Assembly (NCBI GenBank): GCA_976226885.1
Contig: OZ320315.1
Coordinates: 97,588,001-97,652,000, forward strand
Direction of reading: 5' to 3'
Length of the DNA: 64,000 nucleotides
Source: Iphione sp. A-MEVVRFRX5
Lineage: Eukaryota
Shown here piece by piece: positions 1 through 64,000 of the stretch. Position 1 is the first letter of the stretch. Each line of letters opens with the position of its first letter. The notes beneath the pieces are model-generated. The model made no database searches. It worked only from the letters and a program-made list of their open reading frames with translations, and was not told the origin of the DNA. The translations under genes and the position numbers were made by a program.

Positions 1-450
1 GGCAGCATAACTTTTCTTTAATAGACGATTCAACACTCCAATCAATATTTAGGTCACCTGCTAGGATAACGTCCAACTTATCTAGTTTTGGGATAGAGTA
101 GAGAGTATTTCCTAAATAATCTAAAAAATGCAAGAAGTTACCATTTAGTGGCCTATAAATCAATGCTAACAATGATACTATTTAAGCCACACACATTCAG
201 CAAATTGGGCACAAATGTTGAAATTTGGTATCTGCTCGTATTTAACTGTTGTATTAAAATATAATAGGATGCCACCACCCTTTGATTTATCCATACCAAT
301 TCTGTCTTGCCTTACTACAGGAGACTCCGCCTAAAGTGACCACCTAAGGGACTGAGCCTAAGTGGTCGCCTAAGGCATTGATTGGGGTGGGGGGGTCAGA
401 CCTGAACTGAACGTGAAATGAAGGAATAAAACTGAAATCAAGAAGAACAT

Positions 451-743
451 TCAGAGACATTTATGGCAATAAGAAATGGCTAGGCAGAATATATTAATCT
501 TATAGACAGACTGTAAAATATCATAGATCATAGTTCCATAGTCACTCTTTCTTAAAAACTGGTGGAGTGTTGGCTGCACTTTGTTTCTTTTGGGCATGGT
601 TCTTTTCAGGGATGTTGATGATGTCCATGACAGGATCCAAGGCAGGGCAATACCCTTGGGCAGGCAGTACATCCTAACATGATCCAGCATATTTAGGATC
701 TCATGATGCTTGTGCTGGCTTCCTGGGATGGGATTCTCATCAG

Positions 744-781
<38 letters not shown>

Positions 782-2065
782 CTGGATTCTACATCTTGCA
801 CCTGTAGGCCAGCCTTCTCCTTGACCTCTTCAATGAGATGTTGTTCCCACCCCAAGTCATGGGGATCATGAGACAGGCAGTTGGTCCTTTCCTCATAGTC
901 CTCCCTGGTCAAAGCTGTCCCTGGGAGGTGAAGTCCTTCATGTCTCCATCTCCTCATCATCTTCCTCCTCTGGCTGTGACTGGCTGAGATCAGCATCACC
1001 TGGATCAGATCGGGGGATACTCCTGCCTTCTTGAAGCACTTTAAGACTTTGCTGGCTGGTGCAACCTTCACAGCTGCCTTCATGCAGGTGATGGCCATGT
1101 GGACATCCACACTCTTGATGATCTGCTGGGGGCCTTCTCCACTATCCAACTTGGCCAGCACATGCCTGAGGACAGCCTTGTGATAGTGACTCTTCACACA
1201 TTTGATGATCCCCTGGTCAAGGGGCTCCAGCAGGAAAGGGGTGTTGGCAGGGAGGAATACCAACTTTACATTGGACACCCTCAGGTGATGGGGGTGTAAA
1301 GGGGCATTGTCCAGGATCAATGCCACCTTCCTGCCGTGGGCCTACATCTTCTTGTTGAAGGCCTGGAGCCACTTCTCAAAGATTGAAGAGACCATCCAGC
1401 CTTCTTGTTGGACCTCCATATCACTAGTAAACCTTTCAGGTCCAAATTCCTGAAGGCCTGGGTCTTGCAGCTTTCCCAATGACCAGGAGCTTTTCAAACT
1501 GTCCAGCCATGGATTCACAGGGAGCAAAAGTCAGCCTTTCCTTACTCCTCTTACCCCCAGCTGTGTCACTGCCCTTGACAGCAAGGGTCTTTTCTGGGAG
1601 GACCCAGAAGAAGATACCAGTCTCATCCATGTTGAAGATGTCTTCTTTCTTGTATCCCTCAAAGAGGGTGGGCAGCCTCTCCTGCCACTGCCACACTGCC
1701 CCCTCAGGGACACGGGCCCTCTCTCAAGACACCTTCACCCCTGAGATGCAGTGCCTCTTCATAAATCTTGAGAGCCATTCCTCTCCTTTCCCCAGTTCTT
1801 TGCTGAAATGCATGACTTTCTCCCTGATCAATAATCCAGAGACAGGGACCTGCAAATCCCTGGCCTCCTGAAACCAGGCAAAGACTGTCTCATCCATGGT
1901 GGTGAGGTCAGGGGATAGATGTCTTCTTTTAGTCCTCCATGATGGATGCCTTCCTCTTCAAGATGTTTTGGACTTGTGTCTTGCCTATGTTGAATTCGCT
2001 TTTACCCTCACTGGCCTGGATGAGTTTCACCCTCTCAGCAAGACACACTTCTCTTGGGTCTTTTG
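451..2065 (-). pseudogene. pogo/Tigger transposase (HTH_psq/CENP-B + DDE_1), frameshifted
   Basis: ERVKLIQ..EFNIGKTQVQNILKRK (HTH, 1929-2065); YKKEDIFNMDETG..PEKTL..GGKRSKERLT (1436-1696); LILDNAPLH..VFLPANT..LEPLDQGIIKCVKSHY (451-1326). Confidence 0.92.
744..780 (+). repeat. (CAT)n microsatellite encoding the poly-Asp run of the transposase tail
   Basis: about 12 CAT units. Confidence 0.95.
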
Positions 2066-2072
2066 AAGGGCA

Positions 2073-62030: not shown

Positions 62031-62059
62031 CTGATAGGACACAAATTATTCTTTGATGC

Positions 62060-62320
62060 CTACATGTTAAAATCGAGGTTTAACACATGTACAAGGAGTC
62101 TATCTTTCATGTAGATATAATCTCTCTGATAAACGAACTCTTAGATGTGGAGGAGGTAAGGGAGGGAGGGAGCATTGATTGCCACACAGAACATGTGAAA
62201 ATCGAGGTTTATCACATATACAAGGAGTCTGTTTTTTATCTAGACTAAATCTATGTGATAAAGCATGGCAAACGAACTCTTATATGTGGAGGAGGTGGGG
62301 GGGGAGGGAGGGAGCACTGA
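62060..62320 (+). repeat. ~140-bp subterminal tandem duplication next to the right TIR
   Basis: aaaatcgaggttt..aaacgaactctta(g/t)atgtggaggagg..ggagggagca x2. Confidence 0.8.
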
Positions 62321-62410
62321 TAAAACCATCTAGCTGAACCTGGGGTGGGGCAGGAGGCACCCGTGGAGGCACCCGTGGCTGTCATCCGTGGAAGTTATTT
62401 CTATTTCCTT

Positions 62411-64000
62411 GAATTGAATTGAATTGAAAATGATTTTATTCTGATCGTCGCCCTTAAAGGGCGTTATTAATGATACAGAAATAGTTGTGAACAAAGTTGG
62501 AATGTTCTTAATTTTTCATTGTTCTTAATACATCATTGTAGTAACAACTAGTAATCATATTTGCTACTTACATATAGTTTGGCAAGCAATTTGAATACAC
62601 CACTTTCCCCCTGACTCCTCATAAGCACATCAGCATCATTCCAGGCTTTACAGCCTGAATAATAAAGTGATTTTTTAACTTTATTTTTTCTGGGTTTCGC
62701 AAGCTTAACCAGTGGTCCAGCTGCATTTCTTGTGGCCATTATAGGCTTCATAGGCAGCAAGTTATTATTAACCATGCTGTTGATTGTACATAGTTGGAAG
62801 AGATGCCTTCTTTTTACCACACTGTCAATGTTGTATTGTCGATGTAATTCAGCTACTGTTGGTCTGTACTCCGTGTTTTTCTGGACTTTATCAGTCATCA
62901 TCAGGACTCTGGTTTGTAACCGCTGCAATCTATCTAGTTTTGACTTCTGATTATTACATAAGAAAATGGTACTGTAGTCCAGTTGTGGCCTAATGAATGC
63001 TCTGAATGTATGCAGCATTTCCTTCTTGTTCAGCATATGTTTAATTTTGTTTAGCACCCCAACTTTGACAGTTTGTTTTTTTAGGACCAATTCCAGCTCT
63101 ACATCAAACATGAGATCACTATCAATGGTGACACCCAAGTATTTATAGGTGTCTACAGAGTCAACCACTGTACCATTTAACACAATTTGTGGCAGTACAT
63201 TATTAACAGAAACTCCTGTTCTTATGTGCATAATTTTTGTTTTTGATGTATTTAAAAGTATCAGATTTTCTGTACACCATTCATCAAATTGATTGCACAC
63301 ATGTTGAGTTCTGAAATGCAGTTCATTTAGGTCTTTGGCCTCCACAATGACCATGGTGTCATCAGCAAACAATATGGTGGTTTCACTTAATCTGTCTACA
63401 ACATCGTTAATGAAAAGTGAGAACAGCAGGGGCCCCAATGTTGCCCCTTGCGGTACCCCATGTTTACTGTCAAGCACACCAGAGGTCAGTTTGTTTGTTA
63501 CACATCTCTGTTTTCTTTGGTCAAGGTAGTTTGTGAATAGGTTAATTTCTCCTTCAGAGAGATTGAATATGTGGTTTAACTTTTTTAATAGGAGATCTCT
63601 GTTAACCATATCAAATGCCTTTTTTAGGTCAAAGTATATGATATTTACAAGAACTCCATTGTTATAGGCCCCAAAGATATGGTGTAGTGCAAATGTGATT
63701 GCTTCCCTTGTTCCTCTCCTTTCCCTGAAGCCAAATTGATGCTGTGACAGCAGGTTATTTGATTCTAGATGTTGGTAGAGGTGCATAATCACTAGCTTCT
63801 CCAATATTTTACATGGATAAGGTATCATTGATATAGGCCTGTAATTATCCCGATTTTTTTTGTCACCCGACTTATGTATCGGAATTACTCTAGCTGTTTT
63901 CCAGCTATCAGGAATTGTGCCCTAGCTTATTATCATGTTTAGGAGATGGCAGAATTGGTCCAATGAGCACATAATAATGTGTTGCATAAATTCTGTATTA
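62411..64000 (-). mobile_element. CR1/L2-type LINE, 3' part (continues beyond the window)
   Basis: RT ORF 62548-63828 (QFGFR, DLKKAFD, PQGATLGP, FADD, YLG); one upstream in-frame stop at about 63922; hairpin CGCCC/GGGCG 62449-62463; AATAAA; (TTCAA)n tail. Confidence 0.93.

Follow-up and report, generated by a model that had tools for sequence, protein, structure and literature searches.

The closest described counterpart of the locus analysed here is flamenco of Drosophila melanogaster, a uni-strand somatic piRNA cluster that is 79% antisense (PMC10495008), consists mainly of Ty3/mdg4 LTR elements and has a promoter mapped beside dip1 and a demonstrated piRNA output. The hallmark of uni-strand clusters is a high density of 24-32 nt small RNAs, biased to a 5' U, that stem from a single strand of a long precursor. 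Uni-strand and antisense-TE-rich read-through clusters are widespread among animals (PMC11615739), and in planarian, slug, mammal and mosquito clusters single-strand precursors run through antisense transposable element (TE) fragments (PMC11615739; bioRxiv 10.1101/2022.08.22.504762), so that a flamenco-like layout is not specific to flies. In introns, too, TEs of different classes are biased in orientation with respect to a single transcript, which is explained by selection against the poly(A) and splice signals of sense insertions (PMC3517506, PMC3088655). The whole 64-kb stretch of DNA that we analysed, hereafter the window, resembles flamenco in being a long gene-free block of nested fragments, mostly antisense (about 89%) if read from the plus strand, with about one copy per family. 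It differs from flamenco in being dominated by LINEs with microsatellite tails and in that no promoter or precursor start was recognised in it, and it is known from sequence alone, whereas the read-through and uni-strand clusters of other animals were defined by small-RNA mapping, often with an upstream gene. It differs from biased introns in that their bias is weaker, at most about 2:1, and in that its 64 kb showed neither an exon nor a host domain.

Transposon remnants with protein-homology support make up at least 57% of the window, which holds no N runs. An earlier note on this DNA had described an extreme minus-facing bias among these remnants, and tblastn, the ORF2 HMM, the Pfam survey and long-frame counts all agree with it. 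LINE-like coding sequence amounted to 17.9 kb on the minus strand against 3.0 kb on the plus strand in tblastn with 120 LINE ORF2 homologues, and to 15.3 kb against 2.8 kb when an ORF2 profile HMM, made from database homologues, was run over all six-frame pieces of the window. Frames of at least 150 aa numbered 22 on the minus and 5 on the plus strand over the whole window, and in the 27 kb free of homology the excess of long minus-strand frames lay about 5 sd above Markov simulations. The Pfam survey, which covered the 150 longest stop-to-stop frames of each strand (on the plus strand, frames of at least 57 aa) and is blind to short exons and to exons beyond the window, returned on the minus strand RVT_1 ten times, DDE_1 twice, an endonuclease twice, NADAR, HTH_Tnp_Tc5, a weak MULE match and a DUF4431 match whose position was not recovered among the re-scanned frames. 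All plus-strand domains belonged to one element, E3. Within that scope a host-type protein domain was absent from both strands and TE domains alone were returned, in keeping with the earlier note, which had recognised no host gene; nor were tRNA genes found in the window. The co-oriented block spans the window. Its bias is present in every part and is shared by the two TE classes, with LINE, pogo, MULE-like and TIR elements facing minus alike. The strand bias is thus confirmed as real and as extending to both window ends.

The minus-strand LINEs account for most of this block. At its beginning lies an endonuclease fragment (20-318; tblastn, ORF2 HMM positions 82-182) that runs toward the window start, and two further pieces, an endonuclease fragment at 2867-3264 (HMM 88-218) and an endonuclease N-terminal fragment at 12015-12167 (tblastn and HMM), are possibly one old element split by later insertions. 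Between these two stands a long LINE at 5966-11797 (Pfam, Rfam, ORF2 HMM), with an ORF1 that carries a NADAR domain (10114-11797), an esterase-like stretch identified by motif reading only (9360-10061), an 18S rRNA fragment at 8943-9048 that is the sole Rfam family match in the window and, looking metazoan, offers the one hint that the source is an animal, and an ORF2 with endonuclease and reverse transcriptase (RT; 5966-8770); the esterase-like middle ORF was without confirmation in a PDB sequence search. Within the 3' UTR of this element sits a 5'-truncated LINE at 3797-5887 (tblastn and HMM), with a (TTCTA)n tail near 3660, that shares 48-60% aa identity with the LINE at 62.6-64 kb. The latter (62420-64000) runs from RT to C-terminus with a 457-aa open frame (Pfam RVT_1, E 1.7e-35) and an (ATTCA)n tail, and its 5' part continues past the window end. 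An RT C-terminal fragment at 13140-14125 (tblastn and HMM), with a (TTCAA)-type tail near 13140, may have its 5' half, split off by E3, in the LINE remnant at 22175-24236, which comprises an endonuclease part (22175-22970) and a piece similar to the middle ORF of E3 (23871-24236, E 1e-5).

Farther along the same strand, a C-terminal fragment with a (TTCTGAC)n tail occupies 26090-27040 (tblastn and HMM), followed by a 5'-truncated LINE with an (AATCTG)n tail at 27880-29915 (HMM 206-845). The latter is possibly the continuation of a LINE 5' part at 33612-35664, in which an ORF1 start and coiled coil (34610-35664) were assigned by reading of the translation and an endonuclease N-terminus lies at 33612-33941; nested between the two is a LINE at 30636-33372 (30.6-33.4 kb; Pfam, HMM) with a nearly complete ORF2 over three frames and 38-40% aa identity to E3. 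A 5'-truncated LINE from RT to C-terminus, with a (TTGAC)n tail, stands at 35740-37168 (Pfam, HMM), a possible, weak esterase-like ORF1 remnant at 39643-40291 (phmmer E 0.02; motif reading), and an ORF1 remnant that includes a coiled coil and the beginning of NADAR at 44254-45921 (34% identity to 10114-10992, E 2e-18). The series is completed by a LINE from endonuclease to C-terminus with a (TTGAAT)n tail at 50120-53458 and a degraded LINE with a (TTGAA)n tail at 54100-55314 (both tblastn and HMM). Those LINEs whose 5' parts survive in the window possess an ORF1, whereas an RTE-clade LINE would be expected to have a single ORF and no ORF1.

Only two elements face plus, both named as exceptions in the earlier note and both confirmed. 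E3 (14990-21797; Pfam), the single large plus-strand element, is a near-intact LINE with an ORF1 of 582 aa that ends in a NADAR domain, a middle ORF of 262 aa, an ORF2 of 929 aa with endonuclease and RT, and a (CTTGAAA)n tail at about 21775-21797. The other is an ORF2 C-terminal fragment at 41742-41969 with a 'WNALP' motif (tblastn E 8e-4; HMM E 1e-4). With its long intact frames E3 looks the youngest element of the window, a statement about appearance, relative age not being inferable from two plus elements. When the proteins of E3 ORF2 and ORF1 and the pogo transposase described below served as search queries, only distant relatives (at most 46% identity) or none were found, the best database relatives of E3 ORF2 being just 28-30% identical, and a PDB sequence search with ORF2 matched only generic non-LTR RT structures, those of R2 and L1 ORF2p. 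LINEs with NADAR in ORF1 have been mentioned as Repbase Tx1 families of Crassostrea gigas (PMC12477816), which three LINE copies of the window resemble in this respect. The window LINEs differ from Tx1 in ending with a hairpin, AATAAA and a microsatellite tail of 5-7 nt and in a C-terminal 'WN.LP' motif, and by these features look more CR1/L2-like than Tx1-like.

Cut-and-paste remnants were found on the minus strand. A pogo/Tigger-type transposase remnant at 454-1957 carries HTH_Tnp_Tc5 (E 1.9e-9, 1727-1957) and DDE_1 (E 1.7e-14, and again at 1345-1530), both by Pfam. A weak MULE-type transposase fragment with a 'DGTF' motif lies at 24303-24683 (Pfam MULE E 6.6e-4, short of the curated threshold), and a possible second MULE-like remnant with a SWIM-like CxC...C pattern, recognised by motif reading only, at 46544-47940. 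A TIR element at 57057-62362, detected by repeat search, has 59-nt terminal inverted repeats that are 92% complementary, internally repeated minus-strand open frames (57416-59070) and tandem repeats of about 200 bp that occupy 59.4-62.0 kb. The minus frames 44254-44868, 39770-40291, 57416-58644 and 46544-47267 gave no Pfam match and were assigned by similarity within the window or by motif reading. Among the classes listed in the earlier note, LINE, pogo and TIR elements thus stand on the minus strand, MULE falls below the Pfam threshold, the RTE label was not confirmed, and the DIRS signature, a tyrosine recombinase with Gypsy-like RT/RNase H and inverted or split terminal repeats, is absent: the per-strand Pfam survey, in a search that could miss a very degraded copy, listed neither recombinases nor integrases nor RNase H, none of the repeats had a suitable structure, and the RVT_1 matches that were located (7 of the 10 on the minus strand) all fall within LINE-homologous stretches.

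How striking the bias is depends on how insertions are counted. A strict count of a single-copy RT marker gives 10 minus to 1 plus (p 0.012). A conservative count, which merges pieces that could be one split element, gives 16 to 2 (p 0.0013; about 89% co-oriented), and a liberal count 22 to 2 (p 3.6e-5). The earlier note's figure of about 25 comes near the liberal count. Cut-and-paste remnants, at 4 to 0, are weak evidence alone (p 0.12). The 16:2 ratio is about 6 times as likely under a flamenco-like 79% antisense as under a 2:1 intronic bias, and about 265 times as likely as under a 50:50 null. These are separate insertions of different families, since the minus-strand LINEs have differing microsatellite tails of 5-7 nt and a DNA-level self-comparison of the window, which is informative on family diversity and unhelpful for element boundaries, returned almost nothing beyond tandem repeats, the minus-strand LINEs being mutually dissimilar. 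Some LINEs are nested in others in the same orientation, and the collinear split fragments bear out the nesting proposed in the earlier note. The window is accordingly gene-free and contains the remains of 18 or more separate insertions; most are LINEs, which belong to many families, and the others are pogo, MULE-like and TIR elements. That many families are present at about one copy each is what a trap locus would be expected to collect.

We propose a model that, in our view, fits these observations best, although we favour it only tentatively and do not regard it as established. The whole stretch would lie inside a long unit transcribed in the germline from the plus strand, in which insertions whose sense strand matched the transcript would have been lost over time and antisense insertions retained. 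Most likely this unit would act as a precursor of uni-strand piRNAs, similar to flamenco or to read-through clusters, and its processing would yield piRNAs antisense to the LINE families of the window, the NADAR-bearing ones included. Co-orientation, gene-poor nesting and a multitude of families are what such a cluster would be predicted to display in its sequence. The DNA elements, which have no direction related to target-primed reverse transcription (TPRT), also face minus, a hint of selection on orientation and not of a LINE-specific mechanism, and the youngest look of the largest plus-strand element would fit a gradual removal of sense insertions. We consider a fuller version of this model somewhat doubtful, namely that the window represents a master locus of the flamenco kind, carried by a non-model animal that may be a lophotrochozoan and made almost entirely of LINEs in one orientation instead of LTR elements. 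The plus-strand precursor of this locus would give rise to antisense piRNAs against a radiation of NADAR-ORF1 LINEs, and the near-intact sense NADAR LINE would have arrived recently and have so far escaped taming and purging.

Three other explanations have to be weighed against a piRNA source. The bias may be that of an ordinary TE-dense, non-selected region noticed as the extreme of a genome-wide distribution, which we think rather unlikely. The window was chosen for its bias, and chance alone would bring about 1.3 of every 1000 windows to 16 of 18, or about 7 per 5000 and 20 per 15000, so that a large genome should contain several windows with a bias of such strength. If split elements are merged, fewer effective events remain, and the strictly independent 10:1 count is much less striking than the larger ones. 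Against chance stand the liberal count, the lean toward minus of the unannotated 27 kb, and the presence of the bias throughout the window in both TE classes. Alternatively, the window may be the body of a long intron or lncRNA of a plus-strand host gene, with no piRNA role, in which sense insertions were purged as their poly(A) and splice signals broke the host transcript and antisense insertions remained. That intronic TEs tend to lie antisense is well documented (PMC3517506, PMC3088655, PMC1794541), and the same selection logic would cover co-oriented LINEs and DNA elements alike; short exons would escape the Pfam survey and others may sit outside the window. The CpG o/e of 0.43, a strong depletion typical of methylated germline DNA, fits a large methylated genome in which introns of more than 64 kb are common; the TG/CA excess is symmetric between strands, so that CpG decay gives no strand signal. 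Such an intron would, however, have to exceed 64 kb, the plus frames of at least 57 aa hold no host-type domain, and a bias of about 89% surpasses the strongest human intronic bias of about 2:1 (PMC3517506), the likelihood ratio being about 6 against. Depletion of AATAAA was not seen on the plus strand, where 36 copies stand against an expected 27.9 +/- 5.1 (48 against 44.6 on the minus strand); this weak test counts equally against an intron and a piRNA precursor. Taken together, we judge an intron or lncRNA body unlikely.

The least probable explanation in our estimation is a neutral insertion preference, in which the direction of TPRT follows strand composition and the replication fork. Nicks would fall on the T-rich strand opposite the A-rich LINE sense strand, or inside the tails of older LINEs, so that the first few LINEs would set a direction in which later ones joined. 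The plus strand is indeed T-rich and the minus strand A-rich (AT skew -0.06 for the window as a whole and reaching -0.28), in several cases a LINE follows another head to tail or is nested in it in the same orientation, and strand asymmetry of retrotransposon integration relative to replication has been reviewed (PMC10030826). The pogo, MULE-like and TIR elements, however, use another integration route and yet face minus, and E3, the newest-looking LINE, is inserted the opposite way. Reported replication-linked integration biases are modest. Tail-targeted integration was rejected as a general cause: LINEs adjoin one another head to tail within 100 bp at only two or three places (the pairs 5966/5887 and 35740/35664 within about 80 bp), most tails are not directly followed by another LINE, and a comparison of the sequences that follow the tails found no common target motif.

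If the reading as a piRNA source is true, the window would be a further case of a known type of locus. If it is not confirmed, the window would be an ordinary TE-dense region or a strongly biased intron, and would serve to calibrate orientation as a predictor of piRNA clusters. If confirmed, it would represent a uni-strand piRNA source made mainly of LINEs in a species other than the usual models, would allow the trap model and orientation selection to be tested beyond the LTR elements of Drosophila, and would tie a host defence locus to the little-studied LINEs that carry NADAR.

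The co-orientation of transposable element (TE) remnants toward the minus strand, proposed in the earlier note, is confirmed by our analysis. Of the stop-to-stop frames that reach 150 aa or more, 22 lie on the minus strand and 5 on the plus strand. By tblastn with 120 database homologues of the ORF2 of E3, the large plus-strand LINE, the minus strand has 17.9 kb of LINE-like coding sequence and the plus strand 3.0 kb; when all six-frame pieces are searched with an ORF2 profile HMM built from 60 of these 120 homologues, the figures are 15.3 kb and 2.8 kb. For an unbiased strand comparison the 150 longest frames per strand were scanned against Pfam; on the minus strand RVT_1 matched 10 frames, DDE_1 2 and endonuclease 2, with further matches to NADAR, HTH_Tnp_Tc5, MULE and DUF4431 (one frame, E 1.1e-6), and on the plus strand only the domains of E3 appeared. 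These frames contained no host-type domain on either strand. TE coding remnants with homology support cover 36.8 kb, or 57% of the window; in the other 27 kb long minus-strand frames exceed the composition-based prediction by about 5 sd, and a minus-over-plus excess at least as large occurs in 3% of simulations.

Facing minus are a pogo-type transposase (454-1957; Pfam DDE_1, HTH_Tnp_Tc5), LINE endonuclease and reverse-transcriptase (RT) pieces (3.8-8.8, 30.6-33.4, 36.3-37.2 and 62.6-63.9 kb; Pfam), a NADAR-domain ORF1 (10.1-11.0 kb; Pfam) and, from protein comparison within the window, LINE ORF1 remnants at 44.3-45.9 kb (with NADAR, E 2e-18) and 23.9-24.2 kb, and a weak one at 39.6-40.3 kb. 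A TIR element (57,057-62,362) has 59-nt inverted repeats, 92% complementary, at its ends. Its open frames, at 57416-59070, face minus and are internally duplicated; diverged tandem repeats of ~200 bp take up about 2.5 kb of it at 59.4-62.0 kb, and Pfam gave no match. The pogo, LINE and TIR classes of the earlier note thus stand as minus-facing, while no LINE was assignable to RTE and no DIRS signature was found in the window; of two MULE-like remnants, both facing minus, one is a weak, sub-threshold Pfam match (24.3-24.7 kb) and the other is putative, from motif reading only. The pogo frame at 454-1341 (minus) also matches uDENN past DDE_1, at residues 217-273, but below threshold (E 0.0019; 19 bits, cut-off 22.3) and probably by chance. 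Both plus-facing exceptions named previously are upheld: E3 (14990-21797) is the sole near-intact plus-strand LINE, with a 582-aa ORF1 that has NADAR at its end, a 262-aa middle ORF and a 929-aa ORF2 in which Pfam recognises endonuclease and RT, and the piece at 41,742-41,969 proves to be a genuine LINE C-terminus (HMM E 1e-4) that bears a 'WNALP' motif.

Where 5' parts survive, the LINEs run from ORF1 (coiled coil and NADAR) through a middle stretch to ORF2. NADAR in LINE ORF1 has so far been noted only in brief, for Pacific oyster Repbase Tx1 families (PMC12477816). Here it ends ORF1 in three copies of different families (14990-16735, plus; 10114-10992 and 45051-45458, minus), followed in two of the three (16766-17551, plus; 9360-10061, minus) by a stretch whose 'FTDSRG...LLAGTNDV'-type motifs suggest an SGNH-esterase-like protein and which has no match in Pfam or PDB sequence searches. 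ORF2 gave only generic PDB matches, to R2 and L1 ORF2p structures, and its closest database relatives share just 28-30% identity. The only Rfam match in the window, a 106-nt eukaryotic 18S rRNA fragment (8943-9048, minus; model positions 477-594, 76 bits), is found in a minus-strand LINE, after the esterase-like stretch and before ORF2, and has the same orientation as that LINE; presumably metazoan in type, it may have arrived by template-switch capture or as a small retro-insertion. Elsewhere, unannotated sequence holds a near-perfect 81-nt palindrome (49556-49636; 40-nt arms, 98% complementary, 1-nt spacer), conceivably a foldback, a MITE-like piece or the source of a hairpin RNA, and the poorly annotated 37-44 kb region holds a 123-bp tandem repeat (42829-43121; 2.4 copies, 77% matches) adjoined by a perfect 23-bp repeat (43256-43326; 3.1 copies).

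The minus-strand LINEs end 3' in a hairpin, AATAAA and differing 5-7 nt microsatellite tails (units TTCTA, CTAT, TTCTGAC, AATCTG, TTGAC, TTGAAT, TTGAA, ATTCA and TTCAA); as they also lack nucleotide-level similarity in comparison within the window and share 25-60% protein identity, they inserted separately and belong to different families. Certain fragments follow one another in ORF2 coordinates and may be the parts of one old element that later insertions broke up, which supports the deep nesting described before and lowers the count of insertions. Possible cases are 12,015-12,167 with 2,867-3,264, interrupted by the 6-11.8 kb LINE, whose 3' UTR holds the 3.8-5.9 kb LINE; 34.6-35.7, 33.6-33.9 and 27.9-29.9 kb, interrupted by the 30.6-33.4 kb LINE; and 22.2-24.2 kb with 13.1-14.1 kb, interrupted by E3. 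A strict count, on an RT stretch that one element can hold only once, gives a minus to plus ratio of 10:1 (p 0.012); the conservative count after merging gives 16:2 (p 0.0013), the minus side being made up of 12 LINEs, pogo, the TIR element and two MULE-like remnants and the plus side of E3 and the 41.7-kb piece, and a liberal count gives 22:2 (p 3.6e-5).

The window has a G+C content of about 41%, no N and no detected tRNA genes, and its plus strand is rich in T and C (T 20,203 versus A 17,789). Strong CpG depletion (observed/expected 0.43) and a symmetric excess of TG and CA (1.25 each) indicate that these TEs have long been methylated in the germline.

We tentatively propose that the window is a uni-strand piRNA source, whose plus-strand transcript would supply the piRNAs. 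The bias across TE classes, the lack of host domains, the many families of about one copy each, the nesting and the co-oriented block touching both window ends are what would be expected in sequence of such a source. At about 89%, co-orientation equals or exceeds the 79% antisense content of flamenco, the Drosophila uni-strand cluster (PMC10495008). All four cut-and-paste remnants also face minus (p 0.12), which argues weakly for orientation selection rather than a LINE-specific mechanism. Against a precursor, plus-strand AATAAA is not depleted (36 observed, 27.9 expected). A long plus-strand intron or lncRNA would follow the same selective logic, by which sense insertions are lost and antisense ones kept (PMC3517506, PMC3088655, PMC1794541), and is unlikely, as the reported intronic antisense bias is at most ~2:1, a likelihood ratio of ~6 against it, exon-like domains were not seen in the plus-strand Pfam survey, and an intron longer than 64 kb would be needed.

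Chance, combined with the choice of an extreme window, is a somewhat better prospect than an intron, since at p 0.0013 about 7 windows this biased are expected per 5000. A neutral, self-reinforcing LINE insertion bias that acts through the A-richness of sense strands, through tails or through the direction of replication (PMC10030826) is supported by a few head-to-tail and same-orientation nested LINE junctions; we consider it improbable, because DNA transposons also face minus and the newest LINE points the opposite way. The window resembles a piRNA cluster in anatomy alone, and we do not class it as one. Flamenco-like uni-strand clusters, read-through clusters and antisense-biased introns are already known, and uni-strand and antisense-TE-rich read-through clusters are common in animals (PMC11615739). 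If confirmed, the piRNA source proposed here would be another such locus, set apart by its LINE dominance.
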